From NCBI GenBank assembly GCA_964199315.1, contig OZ116705.1, positions 16,120,001-16,184,000 of the forward strand: 64,000 nt of DNA, read 5' to 3'. The notes under the pieces were generated by a model, which was given only the letters and a program-made list of their open reading frames with translations, did no database searches and was not told the DNA's origin. This document shows, piece after piece, positions 527 to 31,979 of this stretch (position 1 is the stretch's first letter; each line of letters opens with the position of its first letter). This DNA comes from Orbicella franksi (taxonomy: Eukaryota). The translations under genes were made by a program, and so were the position numbers.

Positions 527-2493
527 ATGAATTACAAAAGATGTTTCTGTTCGACATTGTCAGCTGTAGTTTTTGCGAGCTGTGTATTTTTATCAAGTTA
601 TGTTCTCAACAATTCTTGTAGTTTTCTGTCAAATTGCAGACTTGACATTACTTCAACCTGGCAGATGGACACTGACGAGATACTCAAAGACAAAGGGGTA
701 ATATTAACTGAGGAAAACAACCTCTTGAGACTGAATTCAAAACACCAACACGACTCCTTTAATGTAACGGACCTGGTTCTAAACGAACTTCACAAAGGAT
801 TCTTTGCTGCGATAAGTGAAAACGAGGCCAGCGGTTCATCGTTGGACAGTGTCGTTTGTGTTTCGGAACCAACAGTCTTAGAATGCCAAGAGGCTGGATT
901 TGCTGCACTGCTATTGGCCACTTTAGATCACGTGTCGTACTGCCTCACGCTTGGGATACGCAAGGTGACGATTCATTGGAAAAACTGTCAGTCATCTTGT
1001 ACAAAAGACCCGCGGATAAATTCATGGCCGGCATTTTTTGAGCCGATGAATGCGGGGACTGAGCTGAGTGCTGACAAAGTCATTTGTTTGGGAGGCACCA
1101 TCGTCGGTAGAGTTCTTGCGCGTGAATCTGCTCGCTCTCTGACGCGTTTGAGTGCGCAGCAAATCAAACAGTTCAACATAGTTTCCAGGGAAAGCTCTCT
1201 TCTGGATGTTGGATTTAGGAAACGGCAAAGTCTGCCAGGCTACGAAGAAGGCGCGATAATTACATCAGAATTACGAAAATGGGCCTTCACTCTCATCACT
1301 GAACATTTTCGACCACAAAAGATCATTCTGACACGAGTGAACGAATTTTACACGAATAAAATGCGGGGATTCAGTATTCTCGGGGTCCATGTGCGTGCGA
1401 CAGATCATACGGCTGAGACTGAAGATCACACTTTGCCCACAATGGAGAAATGGATTCACGATGCTGAAGCAGTATTTGAAACACTGAGAGAACCTAAGAG
1501 AATATTCCTGGCCACTGATAACTATGAGATTATTGTCCGCTTTGGAGAACATTTTGGAAAGAATAAGGTGTGACATGAAGATATTAGAAAATTCTGGTCT
1601 ATATGACTTGGGCTGTGTTTTTCAACAACAACAATAATTTTTATGAGCTCGGAAGAAAAAAAATTCCATGAAAGACATTAAGTAGTCATTAGAAGTAGAT
1701 TAATAAGATAGAAAGAAAGTACAGTGAAACTTGTATTAAGCGGACCCAATATTAAGCGGACACCCTACAGCCGCTGAAGTCCCAAAATTTTCCTCCCGCA
1801 TTTACTGTAAAATGAACCTACATTCAGCGGACACCTCTGTTAAGCGGACGCGGACACCAATATTAAGCCATTTTGTTGCACAAAACCTGCAATAAGCGGA
1901 CACTTCAAGGGCTTTTTACTTCTAAGAGTTCAGCTATAAAAGAGTCCTTTAGCATTGTTCAGTGATGTCATTTTAAAGCTAAGTAGATTGTTCCAGATTG
2001 ATACGCTAGTCTTTGATCTTACTCTCTGTTACACTGTGTTACAAAAGGGTTAATAGTTAACTATTATTGCACAACATATTAGAACATGCTTAGAGCGGAC
2101 ACCCGGTATTAAGCGGACACTGCTGAGGGTTTCATGGGTGTCCGCGTAATACAGGTTTCACTGTAATTTTTTTTTTTCTAAAGAGAGCCTAGAGGCTAAA
2201 AGAACCGTTACGTTTTCGAGTTAGCACCTATTAGCCATTTAATGTTATTTTTATAACATCATTGCTTTAAGTAAGCTTTCTATATTTTTCCATTCATGCA
2301 TGTCAAACAAGACGCATATAAATAATTTCAAGATTTCAGTTTACTTTCATTTTGTTTCAACTGTCAAAGGCGCGGAAATTGTATTCCCAGGATCACGATT
2401 CTTTAATCTTTTTTTCCGTTTCTCTCACTTTTAGTGAAGCAGTGGGTTACGGGGGAGGATATCTGCTTTGATTGTTTGACAGCGAACAGTAAA

Positions 2494-2524
<31 letters not shown>

Positions 2525-3302
2525 TAGCTTGAAAACAGTGTTGTCTACTAGAGACATCCTGTTTGGGGAAACCATGCACCTTTTCTAAAACTTTCCTCAT
2601 AGGAATCAGTCTGCTTCCAATATTGAATAGAGGGGGTAAGTTTCTAAAGAAACTGTGGTTCTGCGTCGGTGGGGAGTATAATTTGGTTTTGTCAACTGGG
2701 TTGATAATGTGAATTGGCCACCGTAAAGAGATTTGAAAGCTTTCGAATCTCTTTACGGTGGCCAATTCACATTATCACATTATCAGAGTGTGACCGTGCG
2801 ACTAATGTGTAACTTCCCAAACACAAACGGCTAGTAGTACGCAAAGAAGTTTGTAAACATTTTCCATTTCATTTCAGGTGATTTACACTGCTGCTGTCAG
2901 GGCAAGCAAGTACTACTCCAAGCATCCAATCACCGGTGGGTTCACAAACGACACTAGTCCTATCGAGATTGGTTCCCAGGTTCTTATCGACATCCTGCTG
3001 TTGGCCAAATGTAATCATTTCCTCCATGGCGAGTCAAGCGTGGCGACTTTAGCTTCCCTTTTCAACCCAGAGATGAAACTTTTCTTTATTGGAAATTTAG
3101 GACAGGATGTTCTTGTGGTAAGTTTTCAGTTAGGGGGAATAAAATAGTCAGATTCGGATTAGATTCCAATTGATTGTGCCCCCAGTGTAGAGTTTGTTAT
3201 TGGCTATCGCCTTGCTGTGATCATGAATTGCTGTTTTTCCAGACGAGTCTGTGTTCAAAAACATTTTTGTTCAAGAAGGCATACAAACAAAGCGAAAGAT
3301 GA
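527..3302 (+). CDS. NodZ/FUT8-like (GT-B fold, GT23-like) fucosyltransferase, type II membrane protein
   Basis: Exon 1 is 527-1567 (AAG|gtgtga, phase 0). Exon 2 is 2878-3117 (atttcag|GTG...GTG|gtaagt). Tentative exon 3 is 3243-3302 (ttttccag|...TGA); otherwise read-through stops at 3147. N-terminal hydrophobic anchor (AVVFASCVFLSSYVL) and the three GDP-fucose motifs GVHVRATDH, IFLATDN and VLIDILLLAKCNHFLHGESSVA. Confidence 0.8.
1722..2163. mobile_element. Tc1/mariner-type MITE in intron 1 of the fucosyltransferase
   Basis: TIRs CAGTGAAAC(T/C)TGTATTA...TAATACAGGTTTCACTG, flanked by TA on both sides. Internal TAAGCGGACAC repeats. Confidence 0.85.
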
Positions 3303-3500
3303 ACACAATACTTGATTAACTGACGCTTTCGTCTCTTTTGCATTTCAAATCGCTGAGAATTGCAATAGCAGCTATTTTTTTTACGCAAAAGTCCCCGTTA
3401 TAGTCAGAGAAACCAACTACCCGAAATATGTTGAATTCTGGACTTGCACCCACCTTACGATTTAGTGCATTTATGCCAAAATTGCATGATAATGAGGTGC

Positions 3501-3820
3501 AAGGATGTGCAAATAGATGACAAGCACCTGGTACTTATTGGTTTTGAAAATGACTGGGCAAAGCAAAACAACAGCAACAGCAAAACAAAAACAAAACAAG
3601 GGTGTGCACATAGTTGATAAGCACCTCGCATCCATTGGTTTTGAAAATGACTGGGCAAAACAAAACAAAACAACAACAACAAAACAAAACAAAAACAAAC
3701 AAACAAACAACAAGGATGCAAGGGTGTGCACGTAGTTTAGAAACACTCGCATCCATTCGTTTGGAAATGGCGCAGCAAAAAAAACAACAACAAAAAAACA
3801 AAAACAAAAACAAACAAAAT
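3501..3820. repeat. Three imperfect ~100-120 bp tandem units with (CAAAA)n-rich spacers
   Basis: Units start aagg(a/g)tgtgca at ~3501, 3598 and 3720. The first two share ttggttttgaaaatgactgggcaaa. Confidence 0.8.
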
Positions 3821-4045
3821 AAATAAAGAAATAAAGAAATAAACCAGATTGAAAGTTAAACTTAAATTACAGCATAATATATTATTACAAATGAAGGTAA
3901 CATTTACTCAGAATAACTAAGAAGCTAATCTGAAGCTAAGCTAAAAGCTAAGCTGAGTAAAACTAAGTAATGTTTACATATCGGATGTAGGTTGGCGCTA
4001 AAGCTTGAATAAAAGAGGAAGAGACAAAAAATAATAATAAAGAAT

Positions 4046-4095: not shown

Positions 4096-4740
4096 CCAGT
4101 TGAAACCTCATGAGCAGTAAGACTGTAAGATATTTAACTTGATTTTTTTTTAAACGTTTTAAGGGGGAGGTGTTTGATACTTTCGTCAAGAACAAAACAA
4201 GGACTCATGAGACGAGAAAGGCGCGCTTCCATATGTACCTCTATTCCCAGTTTACTTGAAAGTTGTTGCTCAATGAATATACAAAAACGGAAAACATTCG
4301 ATAAGATGTTTTTTTTTTTCTTTAGGACGGCGATTCCAAACAAAAATCTCACTCTGCCATAAGTGACAGTACAGCAATACAGAAAAAGGAGTTAGGAAAG
4401 CAAGGTCAGATGGTTAATTGGTATTCCAAAACCAAAGAATCTTACGGTACTTGCCCAAACATGGCCATACGACGGCTGATTGGCCCGAAGAAAGTAAGAG
4501 CTGAATTAAGATAAAGAGAATTACAGGAAAGTAGAGTTGCAATCCATAATTAGATGTCGCTTATTTCCAATTCATACCCCATTGTCCATTCTTCGTTTTG
4601 CCTGAGAGTTTTTCTGATCGTAGTTATGAGCGTTATTGACGTGTTTATTTTGAAAGCAACATTCTCGTAATTGCGCACTGATTGCACTTTTTAATTCGGA
4701 AAACGTGTTACTGTATTGCAGAACATTACTGCTTCACACT

Positions 4741-5089
4741 CACCGTATTCACAAATGGCGGCCCTCCTGGGGCGAGCGAGCGGTAAAACACGAAAACGAG
4801 GCGTTGTAGGATGATCGGAGAAGTGACGGGGCTAACATGTCTGTTTCACTTTGTGAGGACGATATTCCTGGCTCATCTCTAGCTGGCAGAAACCCAGCAG
4901 AGCTAAAAACTGAAGAGTCACGTTTTTGGCGCAAATGCAGAAACGAGCCAGCGAAAGGACTGCGGACAAAAGCTCATGTTCACCCAGTAACGTCTCCGAT
5001 CATCTGTAATATTTTTAATCCTACAACGCCTTGTTTTCTCGTTTGACCGCTCGCTCGCTCCTGGAGGGCCGCCATTTGTGAATACGGTG
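4741..5089. mobile_element. MITE with long terminal inverted repeats
   Basis: caccgtattcacaaatggcggccctcc at 4741 is the reverse complement of ggagggccgccatttgtgaatacggtg ending at 5089. Pairing continues imperfectly for ~70 bp. TSD unclear. Confidence 0.8.
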
Positions 5090-6516
5090 CATGCGCATGT
5101 AGAATATAGTTGTACCATAATAACATACCGATCTCCCTTGCAGCGAGTTCACTATTTCGATTACCACCATCACCACTGCTTGTGTAATATTTCTCAAACT
5201 TACTAATAATTACCCGGTCTTAACACGAGAGACAATGTTTCAGCAGGATATCCAAACACTGAGAAGAAAGTTGAAACTACGAGCACGGCGGAGTATTTTT
5301 GACGAAATTCGAGGTGTTTGGATAGTCGATGCAACACTGTCTCGAGTGTTTTATATATCTTCTCAATCAAAATAAAAACTGTGGAATAAACGTACAACTA
5401 AAATCGTCAAAATCTATGCTAATTAAGACCGGATATCCAAACCTCCTTAACGGTTGTGATTTTCTTTATTTTAACTTGATGAATTATTAATGTGTTTGAG
5501 AATGTACTTTTCCGACTACTTGCAATTAAGGATGATTTTCAGTCCGTACTGCGCCCTCTGGAAAGTTTGTATACGTTTTATTTTCATGTAAAACATCACA
5601 AATGTGAACATTTCGCAACTACTTACATGAAGGAAATTCAAAGTTTCATGTCAACCGCCATTACGGATGCGAGGCTTTTTGCTTCGTTCTTTCTCATATC
5701 ACTTGATGAAACAACTTCGCAGCTGTAAAAATCAATGAAGCTGTTGGGAAAAGAACTTGAAAAGCCTCAAAGATAACGTATGTCGTTTGTAACGAATAAC
5801 AACGATTCGCATTCCATCGAGTGAGACATATAACGTTTATAAACATTAGGGTGCTGAGACTGCGCAGTACGGACTGGAAATCATCTTTAAGGATCAACAG
5901 CCATTAGTAAGTACAAAATGCAAACAATCAACAAACAATATTGTTTTTCTTTTTCTAGAGGGATGGCGATTTAAAAGAAAAACCTTTTCCCGACAGTAAA
6001 TATAGCGAGGAGAAGGAAGTCGAATGGGAAGATGGATGGGAAGATCAGCTTCAGAGCCTTGCTGGGTGTTTCCAAGCTAATGGTCCTTATAGTGCATGCC
6101 CAAATATGGCCAAAGGACGACTTATCGATTCAAAAGAAGTCCGGTCATTTTTAGCGAAATAAAAGTGAATAAAATTATGGATTAAACAGAGACTTTTTTG
6201 CGTGCTCTTGTAATCTTGGGAAAAACGGCTGCTTTCTCAGCTTGAACCGTTTATGTACGCTTCGACGGCATATCAAGCGAGTTTGTTAACCCAGTGTTTG
6301 TATTTTTCGAGCCAAACATACGAGCCCGACAGGCCGCCGGAAGCGCACGCTATTGGCGATAAATCCGGTCATATGAGATTAGTGAATGAATATTGCAGGA
6401 TATCAGGGACCGATTGAACGAGGGGGATATATAACCCTTTCTAGTGGATAAATTGCTGACAAGTGGATAAGCATTAGCCAAAGAAACGACTGTAGACCCC
6501 ACTGTAGATAGATATA

Positions 6517-7587: not shown

Positions 7588-10500
7588 ATGGCGGACGAAC
7601 TGACTATTCCGGGCTGTGTAGAATATCTGTGTCTTTTTGCCCAAGAACACGTGGATTTTCGAATATCGGTAAGTGTATGCAAACTTTAATATCTAGCACA
7701 GAAAAATTCTTCTTTAATACCAGTGAATTGGAGAAATTTTGAGTTTTATGAAAAGTTTCCTTGCTTAACACAATATTTTAACCCTGCACTCTTGCTTACA
7801 AAACTGAGAATTCCCAGTACTGGCAGAAGCCTCCTCTAGCATTTTTCATGTTCCTCTGATCACGTTTTCCCCAATCGTTTTGAGTCCTCTAAAATACCTT
7901 CATGTTTCACCATTGTGTGATATCCACGATATGGATAACAGTTAGAAAGAGAAAAGAAATCTGCAAAATCAACGAAGACTTTAAATTGCTTTTTTGATAG
8001 CTTTGGAAAGAGCTATTTAAAATGGCTTCACAAGGAGCCAACTTAAAAGTGTTTTCAAGCTTTTTACGTATGAAGAAGAAATAACTTAATTGTTCTCATT
8101 TGTAAGTTTCTGATTTTACTAGGCTTTGAATCAATCAAGGTCATAGAAGGGGTGGTGAATGGTCCTTCAAAAACCATGGGCCTTGCAAAATTTTCACTGA
8201 ATTTCATGTGTCTCACAGTCTCGTTTTTTAGTGGTTATGTGCGTCTCGCAGTCTCAATTTTTCTCACAAAGCTGCCTCTTGCAATTAAAGAAATCAAAAT
8301 TTCTCGGGCTTGCTAAGAAAAATGCTAATCTTGTCGTCTTGCAAAGTCTTGCATTTACCATTCACCACCTCTCATAGAGTATGCGACGTTTTAAACGCAC
8401 CATTTTTAAAATTACAACAGTTTTGTTAGAAGTGAGAGTTGTGAATGTTTTTGTTCTTACTGCAATTTGAGTTCATTTGTATCCATCTGTATGATTTCCA
8501 CCCTTGCACAATGTTTTGGACAAGAAGGTCACAGTCCCGCAAGTCCAAGGGGCTTCACATGCCTGTGCATGCACAGTTACTATACAGAAGCTGCAAAGAA
8601 AATTATCTGTAAAGAAATTCTATCGAGAAAAAAGTTAACTCTAAGCTAGCATACAGTATAGAGTCCAAGGATACAAATTGGAGCATGAAGTTTCAGCGAA
8701 TACCCTCAAACCATGAACCCTTGACTTTTTTTTTTTAAACATTTTATTTTTGTTTACTATGGGATGAGGGATCTAGTGTCTTTACACTGTAAAAATGCTA
8801 ATTTTGTATATTGTACAGTGTATGAAGAGCACTAATTCTATAGTCACGGAAAAAATGCGCAAGGTGTACAGTACTTGGTTCAAGTTTCTTTTCTGTATAT
8901 TTATCTTGAATTATAACATAAATTTACATGTAGGTTTTTTTAAAAATCCTCTAGACCAGATGTCTTTTTATATGCATGCTTGTACAATGATACGTTGATT
9001 ACTGGATGATCTTGTGTTTTTCTAGTGGGATTTGGTGTTATCCTCGAAGATTGGAGGTAAACCATACCCTGTAACACACCCAGCCAATTAAATTCAAGCA
9101 TGCATTATCCAGTTAATACTCCCCCGCCGTCTTCCTGCAATTTTTACATTACATCAACCAAACAAGCAATGCATCATCAGGGTGTTGTGAACAATTCCAA
9201 GGAATAATGTGAAAATGAATTGATTAAAAATCCATTTTCTCCTGTGTGTTATGTTAGGAATTGTTATCAGTGTCCACAATGTTTAATTTCAAGATACTTG
9301 TGCAATACCAGGATCACAGGAAAGAAGTAAGATTAATGAATTGATATATCACTTAACTAGATTAACTTCTGAAGGACAGAACCTTCTCAATGTTCTCTTC
9401 GTTGGACAGATGTTGACCACCACACCCTCTGTTAGATATCTGTTTTAGTAGGTTACATATCAATAAGGGACTGAATTAAAAAAAAAAAAACACAAACAAA
9501 CAAACAAACAAACAAACAAACAAAACAAAACAAAACAAAACCAAAAACAAGCAAACACCTTTTTTCAAAGTCAAGTGCAATATTTCATATATAATATTTC
9601 AGCTTTCAGTCTTTTTTGCAAGCCTGGCATGAGGAGACAAATGCATTAAATGCAATATTGAGCACAATCATGAATTAAATATTTACTTGCAAATTTAATG
9701 GAGTTATTCCGCTTGTTTCCTGTAGAATCCTCATTTGGTGGTATGTTTGCCTAATGAAAAGTGTGCAAGGTACCTGCTATCCAGAGTTGTTTCTATAAAG
9801 TGAGTGTTCGTGAATATGACATTTTAAACTTGTATGATTACATGCATTGTAATGACTTAAAATGTTTTGACTAATCGTGCTGCAGAAAGGCATAGCTGGG
9901 AATAAATAGTAAATATGTATCATTTACTAGGTAAAAGGTCCAAATCTATGATTAAAAAAAAAGGTGGTCCATATTACAAGAAGTTGGACTGGCTACGAGC
10001 CAGTGATTAGCCAATCAAATTTGTGGATTTATGATTCTGGCCCACTAAGATACTTCAGGAAAATAATAAAATGTATTAGAAAATAGCCCAAAGAAAATAT
10101 GTGTGTTGAATGGTTTAAGATGAATTCCGCTCAATGTTCGAGCAATAACTGCAAAAATTATTTAGTAATAATCACTCACAGCACTGTAATGTTTTGAATA
10201 CTATTTCAAACATCTCACTGTAATTCAGTTCTCTAAGTGACCCCGCAGTTAAATCCCTAGGCATTCTTGAGAAATTTAATATTAAACCTCGTAAGAGTGT
10301 TTAATGCATGTGTTACTGTGTTTTCAAAAACACAAAACGCCCATTTTTATTGAAATATGGATGACTTCAAGTTCAATTTTCTCTTGTGGGGTGAGCTTGA
10401 GAGCTTAATTCTCAATAAGATCTTCTTACCTTTATTCAAAACATTACCATGCTATGAGATTTTTTTGGTAGCTTTATTTTTGCCATTATTGCTCGAATGT

Positions 10501-13500
10501 TCTGTGGAAATCATACTTGTCTTTCTATAACTCAATAGGAACACAGAACTATTACTAGCACAAGCTGTTGACTTGAAAAAGCTATGGAAACACTCCCCTG
10601 TTGGCCTGTGTTAATTCCCACAGCATGTCTCGTTCTCCCAAACTTGGACTCGTGTTTCTATAACATGTTAGAAATATGGTACATGTATGTTTTACATTTC
10701 TTAATTAATAGGTATTATAGACTGCTTGTCAGGTTTGATTTGTCAGGTAAATCCCATTTCATTCATGGCCAGCAGCAAGCACATACTTTCTTTGATTGTA
10801 TTTTTTTCTGTATCTACATGTACATGTAGGTCTGTTTATGAACTCTGGGGGCAAGGAAACAATATAGAAGATTTGAAGCAGTGTGTTCTCAAATATCCAG
10901 CCAAGAAAATGGTATGATATTTAGATGTATTTAAATTTGTTTTACAAACAAGCAAACAAATAAACTTGTACAGTGATAAACTTAATGCACATAATTACAT
11001 TGATGATAGTGTACATAATTAATTCCCCTGAAATGAGAGCATTTTGTTGTTGTGTATAATAAAATATGTGACATTTTAAATGTTTTCATGTCATCCAATA
11101 GTTTATTGTAAAAGGCATCCTATACTAAAGTACATGTATAGTTGAACCTGTATTAAGTGGATATCCTCGGGAAATGGCTAAGTGACTACTTAATACAGAG
11201 TAACCTTGCAATAAAAACTGTTCAAATACAATCAGTGCTGAAAAGACATTTGACCTCAATTAGAAACATTCATTTCTGGCGTTTTAATGATTTGCAAAAA
11301 TAAGTTACAGGGAAATCATTTGTTGTACCTCTTGTGTTACATTTTTTGAAACTGTACGAACAAGTAACTGACACTGTGCCACCGTTAAATACAGGTGAAG
11401 ACAATAGAAAAAGTCCTGTTGGGACTTCACAAATGGTGACCTCTTGATAGAGGTCAACATTACAGTAATTAAGGGAAGTAATTTTTGGGACTTTGAAAAC
11501 TGACTGCTAATACATGTAGAGGGTGACCACTTAATATGGTGCCGCTCAATACAGGTTCAACTGTTTCTAAATTGTCACGGAACAATAATATTATGACCTA
11601 CATGTACAAGTACACTGTGCTACAGTATGATCAACATATTTTGATTCATTTGCCTTGAGAGACAAAGTATTAATAAAATAAATAGATCACAGGTGTGTTG
11701 CATCTTTGAAGTACATGTATCTCAAACTGAGGAAGTTTGATGTTGCTAAACAAATATATATTAATTTTGTTAAACAACTGGAATTTTTTCATCGTTTCTT
11801 ACAGCAAGCTTTCACCTCCAGTGGCTCATCATTTAAAATAAGCATTGAATCATTTAATAAAAAGCTGACAGTAAATCAACAGAGAGAACTCATTGATGTA
11901 AGTATACAACTTGTGAATTACTCCCATGTAGCTTAATAACCAGATCTGGCATCACTTGGAGAGGTGTGATTGTAAATAATTGTTAGTTCATTAGTATTAT
12001 CACTTCTGTTTTGTTTAAGCCTGGTTTTCACTAGAGACATAAGCATAAGCACAAACACAAACGCAAACACAATAATTCTTATTTCATCGTAAAAAGCAAG
12101 GGCCTTAACACAGGCATAAGCACAAGCAGAAGCAGAAGGATCAAATTTTTTTCTTTTTCTTGTGCTTGCACTTATGCTTGCATTTGCGCTTCAACAAGTG
12201 AAAATGAAATACCACTCAGGCATAACACAAGTGCAAGGATATTTACCATACATGGTTATGTTTGGCCAATGAGAACACTGGATCCATATTACCTTACACC
12301 TAAACAGTTTTCACAATGGCAAAAGGTTCTGATTATTTTGCTTGTGCTTGTGCTTGGGTCGAATTTCATTTTCACTTGGGTCATCCCTATTGCTTGCATT
12401 TGTGCTTGCGCTTAAACCAGTTTGTGCATGTGCTTGCATTGCTAGTGAAAACCAGGCTATAATGCTTTCCACACTTGAGAGATCAGTTGTTTTTATTAGT
12501 GAATGAATCTCACAATCTTAATTCACACCCAATTCCGCAGCACTTAATTGATTTTCATTACTTTGATGTAGTACAGCTGTACTTAGGAAGATTGAAGCCA
12601 CAGTACACCTTGTTATCCACAGCAATTCCAATTCCTTCCTTTTCAAGGCCGTGTAAACCTGACGGCTCCCGATCATGTGTTCTCCTTGCTGCTGGATTAT
12701 GGAGATGACTCTAATGAAGCCCCTGCCACTCCAGACAGGCTGTTCTTTGGTCGCCTGGTAAGAAGAGAGTTCTACATGTAAGTTGCTAAAAGCAAGGGGG
12801 GTGGGGGAAGGGAGAGAGGGGGGTGTGGAGCAGCATTGTTGCTGTTTTTCACAACACCTCCAATGTTATAATATTGATTACCAGTCTTTGTTCAAAAAGT
12901 GAGCTCAAGCAGACTCAGCTAGCACTTCTAAACACTTTTACACTACCTTTGCATTAATCTTATATTTAGTAGAATTGTACTTCTGTTCACTGGTACATGT
13001 GATGCAGTCTGATTTGGCTGAGCTATAAATATTATACAATATTGGCCGCTGTTGTAATATCGTCTCGAGCTCGCAAATTGTTTGATAGAATTCTCAAGCA
13101 ATGAAGCTCATTGTTAAGTAAATGACTGTTTTCTAAGATTTACTTTTTTTGCGTAACTGAAGGTTGGATACGGTCAGCGTCACTTGCTGAAACAGTATTC
13201 ATTGAAGACGAGGCAGTTCATTGGTAATACCTCCATGGATCCTCAACTGTCTTTCCTAATGGCAAATCAAGGACAGGTATGTAGTGACAACCAAAAGAGA
13301 CTAAGGTTACAGTCCTACAGTATAACTTGATCTAAGATGGTTTCTTCTTGACAATCTCCTTTGAGTACACAAGGTGTCGAAGTCAAGGACTAACCTTTTC
13401 AATGAAATGAAATGATTGCAAAGCTTTAGGTGTTGCACTTTTTCAAAACACTCTTTTTTTTTTTTATTTTGTTTGTTTAGGTCCGTTCAGGAAGTCTTGT

Positions 13501-13831
13501 CTTTGATCCTTTTGTTGGAACTGGTAAGCTCTTTTGTTTGTTTTTCATGGTTACTATTTCGTTTTTCTATAACGAATGGTACTTTAGATTTTCAATGTAC
13601 TTTTTCTAGGAACTAATGAGAACATTTTTTTGTTTTTGTTTTTGTTTTTGTTAGGTAGCGTGCTGGTGTCTTGCTCTCATTTTGGAGCCCATGTGATGGG
13701 AAGTGATATTGATCACACACTTCTTCATGGACGAGGTACACAAACTAAGAGTGCATTATTGTTTGTTTGTTTGCTTTTTTAAGTGTAACCACCAGTAAAC
13801 AATACGCTGCGTAAAATGCTTACAATATATA

Positions 13832-13898
<67 letters not shown>

Positions 13899-15382
13899 TT
13901 TTTTTTTTTTTACAATAATGCAACATCAACACTAAGTTTCAAACAAATGCCAAACAGTGCGCTACTATACTATTCTACTGTTCTATTCCTAGACGGAAAT
14001 TTAAATTGCTACATATTTTCAAATCACTTGGGTGGGGTTAAAAGTTACTCTTGTTATCATGACATCCTGCACAGGCGCAGACATTATTCAGCCCCGTCCA
14101 GAGCCGCTTACTCACTCGCTGTTCCGGTTGTGTCGTGAAGGCAAAATCGTCTTTAGTCAAAACGGTGGAACTTTGTAGTCATAGTTTCATACCTCTTACG
14201 GGTGCTAAGAGAATGTGTTGTAGTGTTGTCAGTACACATTTTCTGTTGCCTTTTTGGTCTCAGGTAGAAGCTCTCGAGCCAACAGAAAAGGCCAGTGGAG
14301 AGGTAGAAAACTACGCTATTCTTAAATTTTATAACTGTGTTATTCAGTCCGAGAAGTGACAAGGAGTGATTTACTAAAGCTGTAACTTATCTTAATCCAA
14401 GTAAGCATGTCAACTGAAGTGTTGATGATGTCAGGTGTAGTAACGTTGACCTATTAAATAAACATTGGGCCTACATAATCAACAAAATGGGACATGTAGT
14501 AGCACTCCAAATATACAATGTTGTTGATTACCAAAAAAAAAAAAAAAAAGAGAGAAAGAAAGAAAAAAGAAACAGGAGAAAAACAACAACAACAACAACA
14601 ACAGGTAGATTTAAATAAGGCTGAAGGCGGGAGGCGATTGACATTCCAGGCTACTGTATGACCCAAACTCGACGATATTGTACTCCAGTTCAAAAATACG
14701 ATAGTAAATGTGGATTTAGGAGAGTGCCAAACACATAATGTATCTATTCAGTTAAGTTTTCTCTCAATGATAAAAAGCTTTAGCAGTTTCACACATGGCG
14801 ATGGACGCGTCCTCGACACAGTCTCATTCTAGAGACATTTAATGCGTACCAGTACAGAATTTATAAGTTAGATTTCTGCTCCTACAATTTCCCCATCTTT
14901 CGATTTTCGCTATATGGTAAAGCTTAACGGGAGGTTGATGTGTATCGTTTTATATGTCCAAACATAGTTCAGATCACTATGTCCTTTTTTGTCACGATCC
15001 CTTGTCACACCTCGCCATCGATGTGTCATCATGCATGAAGTTGTAAAAGATGTCACTATCAACAGAATGTGCCGCAGCATTACTATCTTTTAGATACCCT
15101 AGTACAATAGTAAATGTGGATTTACGAGAGCGCCAAACACATAATGTATCTATTTAGTTAAGCTTGCTCTCAAATAATAACGTGAGATGTTTTAACTAAG
15201 CGATGTCTCTCTTTCTAAGCTCGAGACGAAAACTTTCGAGCAAACTTTGCTCAGTATGGACTTGGCAGTTATTTTGTGGACGTGCTAGTTGCAGACGCTG
15301 GAAGACTGGGTCTCAGAGAGGCGCCGTTATTCGATGCCATTATAACAGACCGTAAGTTACAATTATCGATACATTGTATTAT

Positions 15383-15427
<45 letters not shown>

Positions 15428-18400
15428 ATTAATTAATTAATTAATTAAAAAAGTAGTAATAAAAAAAAAGGGATCGCCGTGCTCTTTTTCGAGATAAGGT
15501 GCATTGAAGACCATGTGTTTGTAGAAGTTCTCGTTATTTTAAGACGATCTAATCTTACAACTTTCCGCAATAACAGAAGCTATATTTGTGAAATTTAGAT
15601 CAGTTCAACGTAATCAATTCGACACTACTCAGTCCATTAAGAAAATTGTTGCAGCTGATGTCATTCCTTGATGTAGAATAGGCCTTGAAAAAGAAGGTGA
15701 AGTTAACGCAACCGCTGCCATTCTTCCTTTTATTTCTTTCTTAGCGCGCGCTTGATGTACCAGGTGGCGTGACGTTGCCGCATAAATAGGGAGCAGCGCG
15801 CGCTAAGTAATAAAATGAACAATGATAAGGCAGATGGCCATTGCTATAGCTTTGCCTGGGTTTGACGATCTTGGATGTTCGGTGACCGCTACTTTTCTTT
15901 CCAGAAACAGATGTTATTTACAATTATCTCCACCTTGTCCAGAAATGAACAAAAAATCAATGNNNNNNNNNNNNNNNNNNNNNNNNNNNNNNNNNNNNNN
16001 NNNNNNNNNNNNNNNNNNNNNNNNNNNNNNNNNNNNNNNNNNNNNNNNNNNNNNNNNNNNNNNNNNNNNNNNNNNNNNNNNNNNNNNNNNNNNTGAGACG
16101 TCGAATTCTGCCATCTTGCGGCTGCAAGGCGCGTGAAACTATTGTCGCTAAATGCGAACTTGTTTTTTAAGGAACCTCACCAGTTGACTAAATTCACTTA
16201 ATAGCTCCACGTAAACAATATTTGGCGGAGAACATTTCACTTCAAAGATCTAATTGCAATATTTTTTGGGCTTACAGACACTGTGGCCTTATTCGCTAAC
16301 GAAGCCCGATTTTTTTCAGATTTAGGGTGTTCTTCCGAGCATGTTCTCCCCAAAACGAAGTCGGTGACCCCCCATTTTTTTTACATTTCTGACATAATTA
16401 ACTCATCATCTTACAGTGGTAAAAGTCTCAGAAAAAAATCACTGATGGAAAATTCTCGCACGAACGTCCTTAAGAAAACCACGACGGCAACGACGGCAAC
16501 GGGGAACGTCGCTAAACAAAAGGTTTAATGAGGAGAACTATGGCTGTGCACGTGCGTTATAATTCTTGGTACATTTCTTTGCCGTCCTCTTCAAAACAAG
16601 AAGGTGAAATGACCAGATTCTGTGTTGTCTGGAGAACGTGAACCACGACGGCTATTTTTTTTCAATTTTTGTTTCGAATTTATCGATCTGTCCTAGATTA
16701 AGTTTCGTGATAGCTTTGACAGTGATAAACAAAGCAAATGACTCTAGGGAACGGCGAGATTCGTAGGTAAAATGTAAAATCATTTTTTAATCGACGTCTT
16801 CCTCGGCGTCGCTGTCGTGGTTTCTTAAGCTTCCTAATTAATTACGTGTACAGGATGCGCAGGAACGATCGGCGCGAACGTCCTTGAACAAGAACTTTGT
16901 CTTTCATACTATTTTAAGCTTATTATAGGAACTATAAAAATAAATGTTTGTGGGATTAGAAATGATAGGAGTCAAGATGCAGGTGACCTTATTTTCTAAT
17001 TCCACTTGTCGTAGTTTGATAACCTGCGCTGATTAATTATTTTATTTAATTTGAAATCCGAGGACGGCTAAAATGGGACCAGGCTACTGGCTTAGTCTAA
17101 TTTGGCAGTCAGGGGATTTTAATTTCATCTAATTATTATTATTATTATCCGATTATTTCCAGACTGGACTAGGATGTCGTCGTGTTGCCTGTTGATTACG
17201 TGTATATACTGCGCATGATAACTTATTAATTTCAAGTTACTCTAGTCATATCCAATATTCACAAACTGTTGCGAGTCGAAAAACGATTTGTACAATTTGA
17301 CAAACCGTAAAAGACATTGTATACAGTCCGTATGTTTTCGGATAATTGCAACTCATTAAGTGGACTTAAGGGCACTTAGAATACAAATCACATCTCACTT
17401 GAGCAAGAGGTGAAACGGTTTAATGCGGTCTGGAAATTCCATCTCATTGACTGGAGGCCACTTGACCACACAAGCAACGCAATACACATATACCTCGTTC
17501 TTTAAGCCTGAACGACGAAGTGGCGTGTTTCACGCCAAGGGAAAAAACAACCGGAAGTCATGTCCTTCCCTTGCGTACCAATTGAAGAGGATACTTGATA
17601 GCAACTTAAGTTTTAAAACATCCTCTGACCTTTAAATTGGTTTGGCCCTCCGACTTTGTCCAATTTGGCAAACATACCCCACTAATATTCTATGTGCTTT
17701 TCGGAAAACATACTCGGTAGCAGGGCCGGGCAGCCTTCTTATTTTCCATGTTTTAATATTGTTTTATTAATTGCTGTAGCTCCTTATGGAATTCGAGAAG
17801 GTGCTCGGAAGCTAGATACCTGCGTCGATGGGTAAGATACATTCTATAACTTGTAATTATTAAGTTATATAATCACATGTATCACTTAAAATTACCTACT
17901 TAAGATTATGCAACCATATAAAATTATATAACTTATAATTATTAAGTTATATAATTAACTTGCAATTATATAACTTATAATTATTAATACGCCCAGTGAG
18001 AAGGCGCCCTAAAATCTCTACTTCTCCCTACTAGCATGAGCTGTGACCCAATGATCGCGCGGGTGAAGTTAATGTCCATTTTGATAATCGAAATAAATGA
18101 GTGATTTACCTTTCTTTTTCTCGATGTTTTCTAAAAGAAACAGAAAATAATTTCTCCGTGTTTCTATCGAGTTTACTGTAAATCTACTAGCGTTCTATCA
18201 CGAATGCTGTTCTCTGATTGGCTACGCTACTCACTATCTATTCTGGGATGGATAGTGAGTAGCGTAGCAGTGTGCCCTTGTTAACGAAATGACGGCCGCT
18301 TCTTGGCGTTTTCGAAGTGTCTGTGAAGAGGATTTCGATAAAGTTTCGAACGACTACGTGTAGTAGATTTATATTAAAAGAATTACTATAGATTATTCGC

Positions 18401-25384: not shown

Positions 25385-26364
25385 ACGTTGTTGTTGTTGT
25401 TGCTGTGTATACACTTCTATTAACATTTAAAAGAGGCTTAGTGTTCGCAGGATAACTATTATAACGTTATGAAGTTGTTACTCGAGGTTTTCGTCAAGTT
25501 AAAATAGCTACAAGAAAAAGTCCAGTGAAAGCAACTTGAAGCAAGTATTTAAAGGGGCGTTGCCTTGTCCCTGGTAACAGTGGCAGTGAACTGTAGGGAA
25601 GGCTTAGAAGAAATCATGATCCACAAATTAAGGTTGTATTTAGCACGTTCGCAAGATTGACCGGTCATAGCAGCGGAATTATGCGTGATTTTAAGATCTC
25701 CATTTTATTTCCAATTGTTTGCCACTTCCACTCATACTCTACTTAGGGTTGCAAGGGATGAGACGAGAAGTGCAGTTGAGGTTATCTCCTTCAAACAGCT
25801 TCAAATTAATAGCGACAACATTTAAATATCGTATTAGTCCGAAAAGTATATTATGAAAATGACAGGAATGCTGTTATCATGCAATCATATACGTGTCAAC
25901 CTCATTCGCAGGGTCTTCTCGACTTTCAAAATGGCTGGCGTGAGAATCTGCCGACGAGCCGACACTTTGAAATTGTCGAAGAGAAGGTTGAAGATTGCCC
26001 CCTGCATGCAGCTGGCGCGCTGGAATTTGAATTGACCAGTAGGCAGGAAAAACTGCACTGTCCAACTGTCGTTACGAAATCTGACGTCAATGTATGTTAG
26101 CAGGAAAGGAAATGAGGGGGCGAGGGGGAGGGGGGACGTTTTCTCACTGGAGACGGTATTGAATATTCACGAAAAGGGATTTATAATGCCAGAAACCATA
26201 TCAGATTGTAGAAGGTGGAAAACTGAATATGAAGCTTTAATTTGGGGCCAAAAATAGGTCACTCGCGTCAAGCAAACATTTTGTTCATCGTCCAAGTAAA
26301 CTCAGAGTTCTCGAGCTAATTCATGATAAGAAGAAGCCAGAACAACTTGAGCATTGTCTCTATT

Positions 26365-26370
26365 TTTATT
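26365..26370 (-). terminator. Candidate polyadenylation signal (AATAAA) of the Pro-rich peptide gene
   Basis: tttatt on + at 26365-26370, ~275 nt past the TAA at 26643-26645. Confidence 0.5.
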
Positions 26371-26642
26371 TGCTGCAGCGAAAAAGACTGTTATTCTGTC
26401 GTTTCGGTCGGGATAGCTCGTTTTTCACTGCTGCTCGTACTGTGACCGCAGCCACCGTATGCAAGGCCTGAGATATATAATATCATAAGAATACGAAAGC
26501 TGCATATATCACGCATCTAAACACAAAATACTCGAAGCAAGTGACGTGTTATTTTTAGAAATCCCTTAAAACACCATTACAATCGCTCTAACCATTTACT
26601 TGACAGGAAATCTTAAAACCGGTCGACTGAGCTGGATCAGTG

Positions 26643-27921
26643 TTACTTTTTCTTTCCCCATGGAAACCTTGGCTTAGGAATTCTTGGGATGGGTATTCTG
26701 GGTTTCGGAATACGAGGAATGGGGATTCTCGGCTTCGGAATTCGTGGAATTGGGATTCTTGGTTTCGGAATTCGTGGAATTGGGATTCTTGGCTTCGGAA
26801 TTCGTGGAATCGGGATTCTTGGTTTCGGAATTCGTGGAATTGGGATTCTCGGCTTCCAGTGGCGGCTCCAAAACGGGTTTGGTCTTGGATCTTCTTGTAA
26901 CTCATCGTTTCTGAAAAAGAAAACGTAGAAATTTTATCTCAGTTTTTCCGTGAACCACTTAAGCTCCTTTCACAAAGCACGTGAACAAACATAAAAAGAT
27001 TTACATGATAACTAGTGAGAATTATTGATATCTTCTCCGGAGTATTTGACCCTCAAGATGCTAAAACGTAGAGCAGAATATGTGCAGATTTTGGGCCAAT
27101 TATATTGCCATGTAGCCACGCTAAGGGAGTGACGATTAATAGCCGCCGCCTACACAGCTACTTCGTATTGAGCAAGCCACAGGTTGCCATGGCTACAAGC
27201 GAGAATCGCAGCAAAAATAGGGTACAGAGACACTATATTGTGATAAAATTTAAAAAGGAGCGATGTCTGCTTTAAGACGTTTCTTCTTATCTCTACTTTA
27301 AACTATTTGATGTATAAACCCGTCACGTATTCGCTTTAATCAGGATAAACGCGAAGCAATATAAAAAGGGTCTCCCTACAGAGCAATATTAAATGTTTAT
27401 ACTTTTGTTCATTGAAAGGATTCAGTTTTGTTAATCTTCGAAGAGTTGTAAAGTGGACGTTTTGTGCATTTACAGAAAGTTGTTCAACATTGTACAAGCA
27501 TTCAAAGTAAGGTCATTAGTTATGTTCAAACGAATAGTGAAGGGAATGCGCCGCAGCGGTGACATTAGTTTGGAAGTATGAAACAGCAAAAAGAGTGAGC
27601 AAAGGATTGCTGCTGAGAAAAAAAACAAGGCAAGAGCAATAATTGCCAAAATTGCCATTGGTAAAACATAAAAATTAGTTACCCTTCAGAATCTTCTTCG
27701 TCATCCACTTCGTCTTCGTCTTCTTCATCTTCGTCTTCGAAGGCGCTCTCATCATTCAGTTCATCTTCCTGGGCGACGTAGTCACTTGTTTCATCCCTGA
27801 CAGGAAAATCGTTTCCTTGCTCGTACTGAACTGCTGACTCGAATGGACCTTCCGATAAAACAGCTTGCATCAGAAGACCAAGCGAACATCCCACCACGGC
27901 GATCAGAACAAACTTGTTCAT
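26643..27921 (-). CDS. Secreted prepropeptide, 168 aa: signal peptide + acidic propiece + cationic (RIPIPRIPKP)x6 domain with C-terminal GKKK. Candidate proline-rich antimicrobial peptide precursor.
   Basis: Exon 1 is 27921-27683 (acaATG ... GAAGG|gtaact) and exon 2 is 26910-26643 (ttctttttcag|A AAC...TAA), joined in phase 2, 507 nt. Protein: MNKFVLIAVVGCSLGLLMQAVLS-EGPFE...EDEDEVDDEEDSEGNDELQEDPRPNP-FWSRHWKP(RIPIPRIPKP)6RFPWGKKK*. Gene structure is well supported; function is inferred. Confidence 0.88.
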
Positions 27922-27983
27922 TGTGGAGTCTAGTCGGGGGCTGTCGTCCGCCAACTGTGAACTGTTGCTTTCAGCGTGGCACC

Positions 27984-27989
27984 TTTATA
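27984..27989 (-). promoter_or_regulatory. TATA box of the Pro-rich peptide gene
   Basis: Minus strand reads TAGTATAAAGG, ~63 nt upstream of the ATG at 27921, implying a short 5' UTR. Confidence 0.55.
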
Positions 27990-29039
27990 CTAGAAGGACT
28001 CTGGAAAAACTCACGCCCCCAGCTAACGATATTGTTGCCTTCGGTATTTTTTTTTTTTTTTTAGACCTAAGTGGTCAACTAGTATAAATATCTTTATCTT
28101 GCACTAATAATCAATCTTATGGAGTCCTTACGTGATCGATAACATTCCTGGGCCCAATACAATTCGTATCGACGTCCGATTCGTATTGCCACGGAAATAA
28201 CAAGAGGAAATTATGATTGGTGGAATAAGTAAGTTCCCTATTACGCACGGAGAGAGTTACAATGTAATTACGAGCAAATAATTGGCACAAGTTTGGAAGG
28301 TATGCCGAGTTGTACGACAAAAAGACTCATCAAACAATTAAGCTGATTATAATTGCCGTGCTTAGATAAGTTTTCAACTAAATTATCTTTACTTCCGATA
28401 AATTACGAAGGATTGCTTTTCTAAACATGACATGGCAAGAAGCTTTATTCCTGTTTGTTCCTCACGTCAAAATAATTAATGTTTCCTATTTTATACACGA
28501 AATATTGTGATGCAGCTAACAAAACGGACGCCCATATACACCATCTAAGAATTTGTTTTTTTGTTTTGTTTTGTTTTTTTTTTCTGGCCCGAGCTGAATA
28601 ATTACATTTTTCTGCCGATTTTAGGCTGATAATATTCTTGTGAACATTCCTAGATTATAGCATATGACATTCCCGTTTTATTAGCCCTTGTTGGCGTTGA
28701 TTTTGGAGCCAGATCACAAACAATAACGCCTGGTATGGCACACAACCTCGTGCAGAAATGATATTACCATCGCACACATGGTTTGTGCTGCTGTTGAAGT
28801 GTTGTTGTTGTTGTTTTCTTTTTTGGCTATTTTTTTTTTTTTTTAGGTTAGAGAAAAGAAAAACTTTATATACTGTTTACTTAAAAACATGCAATTGTAT
28901 CGTATGTAAAAATTTTCAACACATAAAAATACATTCTTTTCAAAATTTCAGCCTGTGTGTTTTTCTTAACAATATGCTTAGAATTTCGGAAATTTCAACC
29001 TCGAAATTCTTATAACATATATTCCCATAGAAAAAAAGA

Positions 29040-31145: not shown

Positions 31146-31979
31146 TTAAAGGATTTTCTCATCTTTTGCGGTTCTGCTGTTTGAGTTAACGAAATTGGAA
31201 ATTGACGTGCCATTAACAAGACTAGATCTTCGAAGCCACAATGTTATCGTCCACTGTTCCATCGACTTGTGATTGTCTCTTTCGGCAAGAACACTTAACG
31301 CCCGCTTCTTTCTCTGTGTGTACATTTCGATTTGATCTTCCAAGTCTATGATTCGATTCTCGAGATAAGCTTCCAAGTTTTCGCGTTCTTGAGCTCGTGC
31401 AAGCGTTCGCTTTACCTTGTCCTCCAAGAGTTCGATTTGCAGTTCACGAGCGTTTCGAGATCGTTGCCGCTGTTCCAAGACGTACACTCGTTCCTGCATA
31501 TCTAATAATTGTTCATGTAGCTCCCTTGTGCTTGTCTCTGAACGTGTGCACCGTTCTCGAGCCCTTACCGTTTTTCCGAGCAAAGCGTGTTCTCTGTCAA
31601 CGTTCGCTTTATATTTCCTCTCAGCGATTTTCGCTTGCTTTGTGAATGTCGCAATCTTCGTATCGATTTCGCGAGTGTGTTGGCCACCATGTTTCTCTTT
31701 GGGCCCGGTGTTATTTGTCTCTTCGCGAAATCGAATCAGCGCTTTCCATTTGCTTTGTAGGCTGGCGATAAGCGTTTCGATTCTGTCCCGTTGCGAGTCT
31801 CGCTTGCAGATTTGATCTTCCAATTTCGCTTTCAAGCCCATAATTCTATTGAAACTTCCTTCCACATGATGCAGGCTTTCTTTGGCCTTCTCTGCTCTTT
31901 TATCCGCTGCCTGTATCTTGCTTTTTAAAGTAGCCAATTTCTTACGAATGGCGGTAGTGCCTTGAATGTAAAACGCCAT
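31146..31979 (-). CDS. Divergent tropomyosin-like coiled-coil protein, single exon, 277 aa
   Basis: Uninterrupted 834-nt ORF rich in E/K/R/L. N-terminus TAIRKKLATLKSKIQAADKRAEKAKE and late segment RAQERENLEAYLENRIIDLEDQIE resemble tropomyosin ends. Non-coiled tail of ~40 aa. Confidence 0.7.
   Translation of the reverse strand: MAFYIQGTTAIRKKLATLKSKIQAADKRAEKAKESLHHVEGSFNRIMGLKAKLEDQICKRDSQRDRIETLIASLQSKWKALIRFREETNNTGPKEKHGGQHTREIDTKIATFTKQAKIAERKYKANVDREHALLGKTVRARERCTRSETSTRELHEQLLDMQERVYVLEQRQRSRNARELQIELLEDKVKRTLARAQERENLEAYLENRIIDLEDQIEMYTQRKKRALSVLAERDNHKSMEQWTITLWLRRSSLVNGTSISNFVNSNSRTAKDEKIL

Follow-up and report, generated by a model that had tools for sequence, protein, structure and literature searches.

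Does the minus strand of a 64,000-nucleotide (nt) stretch of Orbicella franksi contig OZ116705.1 (the window, whose positions serve as coordinates throughout) carry a functional gene split by an intron, and if so, what would its product do for the coral? The gene in question joins position 27683 to position 26910 and encodes a precursor of 168 amino acids (aa) that ends in a cationic repeat rich in Pro, Arg and Ile. It had been proposed as a hidden two-exon gene by a sequence-only reading of the window, and both the sequence and the exact junction in a metagenome contig bear this out. The gene is transcribed, precisely spliced, polyadenylated and very highly expressed. Judged by its sequence, the precursor would be a secreted prepropeptide from a functional two-exon coral gene with antimicrobial host defence as its most likely role, a reading that stands about an even chance of being right.

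The coding sequence begins with an ATG at 27921-27919 and ends with a TAA at 26645-26643. Exon 1 closes with base 27683 at the donor GAAGG/GTAACT (the slash marks the splice site), and exon 2 opens with base 26910 behind the acceptor TTTTTCAG/A, which is preceded by pyrimidine-rich sequence (TTTTCTTTTTCAG/A). Splicing gives a coding sequence of 507 nt for the 168 aa. The acidic propiece (65 residues) contains 18 Glu and 14 Asp, hence 32 acidic residues, against one Arg (net charge about -31), and the C-terminal region contains 25 Lys or Arg and no Asp or Glu (charge about +25). Its 72-aa payload consists of 26 Pro (36%), 18 Ile (25%), 14 Arg, 7 Lys, 3 Trp and 2 Phe among its residues, again with no Asp or Glu, and the sole Cys of the precursor lies in the signal peptide. 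The unit RIPIPRIPKP is repeated six times perfectly; at the DNA level, Tandem Repeats Finder reports a period of 30, 6.3 copies and 86% matches over 26668-26856. The program-made list of open reading frames (ORFs) represents exon 2 by other frames only, as had been noticed before; the true frame is missing from it because no start codon follows the stop that lies upstream in that frame.

The locus is present in public sequencing runs whose labels read coral metagenome or give coded names of coral species, and its RNA profile follows the exons. For instance, in a single-cell RNA library (X11), the summed word depth is 6e4-3e5 across the 3' untranslated region (3'UTR) and exon 2, about 4e3 in the bin that contains the acceptor and 0 throughout the intron. 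Poly(A) addition occurs at 26351 and 26363, where contigs trail off into T runs or adapter sequence, at most 19 nt after the AATAAA signal. In a poly(A) metatranscriptome (X1), exon contigs reach depths of 34-170 and one unspliced contig a depth of 16. Two raw-read RNA runs (X23 and X24) yielded no reads over 26350-28030 and carry no weight either way. None of the Logan contigs aligned to this interval bridges the exon-exon junction, because the acidic repeat and the Pro-rich repeat both interrupt these assemblies. The junction itself (28 nt) was therefore used as a query against JGI metagenome contigs, where it was found exactly once, in contig Ga0099802_1020628 (L015). This contig is collinear with the window over 28030-27691 and 26911-25698, the 772-nt intron is precisely absent from it, and its ORF of 187 aa starts at the same ATG as the window gene. 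Positions 110-673 of L015 represent a different allele, from the same species or one very close to it, with an extra 9-residue acidic unit, seven repeats against six, and a payload N-terminus that reads FWGRHRKP where the window has FWSRHWKP (S to G, W to R). A junction-centred 71-mer is covered by only two sampled index words; both occur in 20 runs, mostly RNA libraries and from several studies, which is supportive of splicing and not decisive.

Part of this evidence argues against so simple an account. Among the 20 runs that contain both words, four are presumed to be DNA. L015 reaches beyond the TATA box on the upstream side and about 650 nt past the poly(A) site, and these genomic flanks make it a merged assembly, not a clean mRNA. 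RNA contigs (X1 record 5, X11 record 13 and L015) also extend upstream of the TATA box to at least 28030, and an A16 run that lies about 60 nt farther upstream than that box, at 28050-28065, is likewise spanned by RNA contigs. On balance, these data give good support to the proposed splice. The TATA box and polyadenylation signal listed by the sequence-only reading are both in place (Table 1); given the RNA upstream of it, the box may or may not mark the transcription start, and the RNA may read through from the upstream gene. The sequence from 28030 to 27921 contains no ATG, and the ORF is therefore unaffected by the question of the start site. On the plus strand, one X11 contig ends in an A run at 26530, which may be weak antisense transcription, internal priming or an artefact.

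Table 1. Features of the two-exon gene in the window
Feature	Position	Strand	Remarks
TATAAA box	27984..27989	-	about 63 nt upstream of the ATG; also in the L013 copy, conserved in relatives
Exon 1, coding part	27683..27921	-	signal peptide and most of the acidic propiece; ends GG/GT, phase-2 donor
Signal peptide	27853-27921	-	aa 1-23, MNKFVLIAVVGCSLGLLMQAVLS
Intron	26911..27682	-	772 nt, GT..AG, phase 2, polypyrimidine tract before the acceptor
Exon 2, start	26874..26910	-	last propiece residues (G)NDELQE, then DP-RP-NP
Predicted 72-aa payload FWSRHWKP(RIPIPRIPKP)x6RFPW	26658..26873	-	repeat array 26670-26849
GKKK and stop	26643..26657	-	predicted amidation donor and basic cleavage/trimming site
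3'UTR	26351..26642	-	about 290 nt; AATAAA at 26370-26365; poly(A) addition about 26351-26363

The gene belongs to a family. The search for its propiece in relatives that the sequence-only reading had proposed was productive: an exon 1 query against 5.8 billion proteins returned 19 clusters, and a profile built from these returned 33; ten further loci could be modelled. The exon 1 family thus comprises at least 33 protein clusters of 65-141 aa each, none of them named and all derived from coral assemblies (ENA, Logan or JGI). Nearly all the cluster ORFs run through the donor and stop in the GTAA behind it, and exon 2 was located downstream in most of the contigs fetched for the clusters; it was not found in L010 (where the contig is too short), L016 or L019. 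Eleven spliced models were compared, namely the window gene and the ten further loci. All 11 have a signal peptide, an acidic propiece (net charge -16 to -42), a phase-2 GT..AG intron at the same position and E-[D/Y]-P directly after the last Glu, so that the layout first described for the window precursor (a signal peptide of about 23 aa, a propiece with 32 acidic residues against one Arg and a C-terminal part with 25 Lys or Arg) is kept family-wide. The payloads have 50-97 residues, net charges of +17 to +29, 20-38% Pro and pentads of the type R-I-P-x-P or R-I-R-I-P. Ten of the 11 models end in G-[KR]3-stop, the exception being L011b, and the residue to be amidated differs among members (W, F, L or I). 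The dipeptide ladder ahead of the payload reads DP-KP-NA in L013a against DP-RP-NP in the window, and an Asn-Ala third dipeptide would fit X-Pro/X-Ala dipeptidyl trimming. The charges of propiece and payload are uncorrelated across members (Spearman 0.08), so the two give no sign of being finely matched in charge. Taken together, the models point to a family that is taxonomically restricted to corals, conserved and largely unannotated.

Several loci hold more than one copy. L012 has two intact tandem copies 5.7 kb apart (2264-3848 and 8001-9754); a single repeat unit distinguishes them, and their introns measure 1048 and 1235 nt. In L011, a divergent inverted pair is found (4690-6459 on the plus strand and a reverse-strand copy): one copy has RIPLP/RIPKP repeats and the C-terminus GKRK, and the other has RIPYP/RVPRP repeats, a KPRF-stop without amidation signal and a weaker acidic propiece (-16). 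The second tandem copy in L013, from a related coral (L013b, 13096-14316), is a pseudogene whose start ATG has become ATA and whose exon 1 has an in-frame stop, with exon 2 still open. Such tandem duplicates together with one pseudogene copy bear the marks of birth-and-death evolution. About 3 kb upstream of the window gene, at 31146-31979 on the minus strand, lies a 277-aa coiled-coil ORF with a sub-threshold match to tropomyosin (27 bits against a cutoff of 38.6). The same ORF lies upstream of the gene in L013 and L014; therefore, the three loci are orthologous and their synteny is conserved. The window also contains 131 N, in a run at about 16000-17000 that is taken as an assembly gap or mask.

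The repeat has been kept for its protein sequence. Nine nucleotide sites vary among the six repeat units, and all nine changes are synonymous (eight third positions and a CGA/AGA exchange); because a random change would be synonymous in only 28% of cases, the probability of this outcome is about 1e-5. In pairwise Nei-Gojobori comparisons with the relatives, the ratio of nonsynonymous to synonymous substitution rates (dN/dS) is 0.06-0.15 in the payload and 0.3-0.8 in the propiece, values to be read with the caveat that repeat units may be misaligned and dS thereby inflated. Compared with L011a, the most distant locus aligned as DNA, the exons are 72-75% identical and the intron is about 44% identical, which is the random level. 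Together, the synonymous repeat changes, the low dN/dS and the difference between exons and intron show that the cationic repeat is conserved as an amino-acid sequence, and the payload is under strong purifying selection.

How a host-defence peptide could be made from this precursor can be set out as a series of steps. The signal peptide would be cleaved after about residue 23, letting the precursor enter the secretory pathway, where the anionic propiece (about -31) would neutralize and chaperone the cationic C-terminal part (about +25). The propiece would then be cut off at the conserved Glu-Asp-Pro junction, and X-Pro/X-Ala dipeptides may be lost stepwise. At the other end, the C-terminal Lys residues would be trimmed and the Gly converted to an amide on Trp. 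Amidation in cnidarian precursors does make use of a Gly with basic residues behind it, and peptide N-termini are associated with acidic residues or X-Pro (PMC7523074). The predicted mature product, FWSRHWKP(RIPIPRIPKP)6RFPW-NH2, would have about 72 residues, a charge of about +21 and an extended, polyproline-II-like shape. An AlphaFold2 model shows a helix for the signal peptide, disorder in the propiece and neither helix nor strand in the repeat (local predicted distance difference score, pLDDT, about 82; predicted template modelling score, pTM, 0.19), and the repeat region is consistent with an extended polyproline-type rod. Once released into mucus or onto epithelia, the peptide might bind anionic microbial surfaces through Arg and Lys, while its Ile, Trp and Phe side chains might insert into or translocate through the membrane, with killing through membrane damage or an intracellular target. 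With so much Ile and Trp, the peptide looks at least as likely to act on membranes or penetrate cells as to target ribosomes.

Several results weigh against host defence. Antimicrobial peptides (AMPs) engaged in an arms race seldom show such strong purifying selection as the payload does, and the constraint would suit a structural or binding role just as well as a host-defence peptide whose target is conserved. The exact N-termini of cnidarian peptides are hard to predict (PMC7523074), and the mature N-terminus given above is subject to the same difficulty. The Pro-Arg-Pro motif of proline-rich AMPs (PrAMPs) is absent from the window payload; the sole PRP of the window precursor lies in the DP-RP-NP ladder, and PRPRIP is found in some relatives. 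In homology searches, Pfam returned sub-threshold noise on the acidic stretch only, with no family and no Apidaecin match, a PDB sequence search found no chain at E values up to 10, and a full-length search with the L015 ORF found nothing at E <=0.01 and no named homologue. Exon 2 compared by phmmer with 1.84 billion representatives gave 609 matches, nearly all of them translated low-complexity repeats, and the only two relevant ones are a coral ORF of intron plus exon 2 (P0026) and a bivalve protein (P0065). A literature search on the repeat string returned nothing relevant. Arminin and periculin are not among the matches of the general searches, none of which used an arminin or periculin sequence as query. 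Among feature neighbours in a protein atlas are calcium-binding, osteopontin and bone-sialoprotein-type clusters, with an apidaecin cluster at rank 2 (0.68); all scores are under 0.7, below the level that indicates kinship, so these neighbours are leads only, and the apidaecin cluster is a weak lead to an antimicrobial role. The sequence-only reading had recognized no described family in this gene, and none was found to contain it by the Pfam, PDB, homologue or literature searches.

Some of the same evidence can be read in favour of a structural or polyanion-binding secreted protein, a diblock polyampholyte that works intact or cleaved in mucus or granule packaging, in adhesion by coacervation, in the cnidocyst matrix or in the skeletal organic matrix, where the acidic half would bind Ca2+. 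The 32 Asp and Glu in 65 residues recall acid-rich matrix proteins, and the calcium-binding and osteopontin-type atlas neighbours, the very high expression, the extended rod-like region of the AlphaFold2 model and a conserved repeat of variable copy number, typical of structural repeats, agree with such a role. The conserved C-terminal Gly with three basic residues and the E-[DY]-P junction, however, indicate peptide-style processing, the product is small, and the propiece evolves faster than the payload, contrary to what a functional matrix part would do; a structural role is thus unlikely, without being far-fetched. A venom-like, cytolytic or cell-penetrating peptide used against prey, predators or competitors from gland cells or cnidocytes would agree with the precursor design just as a host-defence peptide does. 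Promelittin has an anionic X-Pro/X-Ala pro-region ahead of a cationic amidated peptide, and the same logic could apply to the coral precursor with its X-Pro/X-Ala ladder and the high hydrophobic content of the payload (18 Ile, 3 Trp and 2 Phe in 72 aa). Such a weapon is nonetheless quite improbable, given that the cnidarian toxins known are mostly Cys-rich or pore-forming folds and that the Pfam and PDB searches brought up no similarity to a toxin family.

A signalling function, as a neuropeptide or hormone-like peptide that acts on a receptor, has some outward support. The Gly-plus-basic amidation site and the acidic and X-Pro context on the N-terminal side follow the rules for cnidarian preprohormones (PMC7523074), the C-terminus would be Pro-Trp-amide, and one study reports a Hydra neuropeptide that is also antibacterial (PMC5614986). 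Preprohormones, however, hold many copies of about 6 aa where each member of this family holds a single payload of 50-97 aa (PMC7523074). The C-terminal residue also varies within the family, L011b lacks the amidation site altogether, and transcript abundance is extreme; signalling is accordingly a very unlikely function. The remaining proposal, that the locus is a translated minisatellite beside a chance ORF and not a gene, has next to no chance of being correct. It starts from the fact that the repeat is a 30-nt tandem array with many database matches that are translated low-complexity DNA, and it is refuted by the spliced contig, the expression pattern, the all-synonymous repeat variation and the low dN/dS, as well as by a two-exon design conserved in divergent loci, the introns of which can no longer be aligned.

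If antimicrobial host defence, the preferred reading, is true, the gene encodes a major candidate effector of coral mucosal immunity and microbiome control, with relevance to coral disease (Vibrio) and bleaching research. PrAMPs are on record from annelids, crustaceans, insects, molluscs and mammals, and a 2024 review includes no cnidarian (PMC11678341). Before digitiferin, the known AMPs of stony corals were damicornin and AmAMP1 only, which makes three (PMC12496222, 2025). Ten cnidarian AMPs appear in a 2025 review, and none of those described in the available part of its text is proline-rich (PMC11767717). What appears to be new here is a coral-restricted peptide family in which a precursor of a known kind, with an anionic pro-region and a cationic amidated end, carries a Pro/Arg/Ile repeat payload that is itself new. 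Beyond this, it can be put forward tentatively, as a claim somewhat short of an even chance, that reef-building corals make linear, Cys-free, amidated Pro/Arg/Ile repeat host-defence peptides of an extended, amphipathic, polyproline-type structure, which would be an undescribed class and the first proline-rich family in Cnidaria, with an action possibly unlike that of lytic helical peptides and of ribosome-binding PrAMPs. Such peptides would offer a new repeat-based scaffold for mechanism studies. Should the product not be antimicrobial, it is still an abundant unannotated secretory product to be entered in the gene models used for coral single-cell and transcriptome work. Standard gene calling splits or misses these genes.

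Known systems share parts of this design. PrAMPs have Pro contents of 14-49% (PMC11678341), and the payload, with 36% Pro, is likewise cationic, Arg-rich and linear. The earlier description of the payload as PrAMP-like therefore stands for Pro content and cationic composition and fails for the Pro-Arg-Pro motif and for homology, with PDB and Pfam searches finding nothing similar to sequences of the Bac7, oncocin or apidaecin type; no motif or similarity backs the analogy with ribosome-targeting PrAMPs. Compared with typical PrAMPs, the payload is longer (72 aa) and much more hydrophobic (25% Ile plus Trp and Phe). As in PrAMPs of the Bac7/Bac5 type, it is linear, Cys-free, strongly cationic, about one-third Pro, made of short tandem repeats and C-terminal in its precursor, and Bac5 is amidated at the C-terminus. 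It differs from Bac7 and Bac5 in its lack of homology, a prepro region that is not cathelin-like, the absence of PRP from the payload, a higher Ile content and greater length.

Closer in layout are the Hydra arminins and periculins, which are also cnidarian, taxonomically restricted and built of a signal peptide, an anionic stretch and an active C-terminal part that is cationic. Arminin combines an anionic N-terminal and a cationic C-terminal part with a C-terminal Gly-Lys-Lys. A review gives periculin the same order of an anionic and then a cationic C-terminal part, and describes periculin as Cys-rich and arminin as alpha-helical (PMC11767717). By these descriptions, the coral payload is set apart as Pro-rich and incapable of forming helices. 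The anionic-pro/cationic-C-terminal arrangement itself is plain in the window (propiece -31, payload +25) and conserved in all 11 models. With damicornin, AmAMP1 and digitiferin, the predicted product shares the character of a secreted coral peptide, and in damicornin, too, the proregion is anionic and the C-terminus amidated. All three are Cys-rich and ShK-like (PMC12496222), whereas the coral precursor has no Cys after the signal peptide and no Pfam domain. Like cnidarian neuropeptide preprohormones, it has a C-terminal Gly with basic residues and, on the N-terminal side, acidic residues and X-Pro; GKKK-stop in the window corresponds to G-[KR]3 in 10 of 11 members. Its one payload of 50-97 aa contains no internal Gly-basic sites, in contrast to multi-copy neuropeptide precursors. 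The window precursor also has an acidic stretch, which recalls coral acid-rich skeletal matrix proteins; this part evolves faster than the payload.

Outside Cnidaria, insect apidaecin and bee promelittin have acidic pro-segments with X-Pro/X-Ala before a cationic Pro-rich or amidated peptide. Unlike apidaecin, the coral gene has no match to the Pfam Apidaecin family and one payload per precursor, against a polyprotein. The exon 2 search brought up one further protein of this layout, the hypothetical protein KAL4218008.1 (CM103831.1, L009:3001-9438) of the clam Mactra antiquata, which has a signal peptide, an acidic propiece, a cationic 69-aa peptide of the (RIPIP)n type and GKK. The clam gene has five exons where the coral gene has two, its propiece contains eight Cys, its cleavage site is KARKK, and neither its signal peptide nor its propiece is similar to that of the coral. 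On these differences in exon structure, propiece and cleavage site, homology between the two genes was rejected, and the clam and coral designs are probably convergent. If corals do make host-defence peptides of this repeat class, a similar design has arisen independently in a bivalve.

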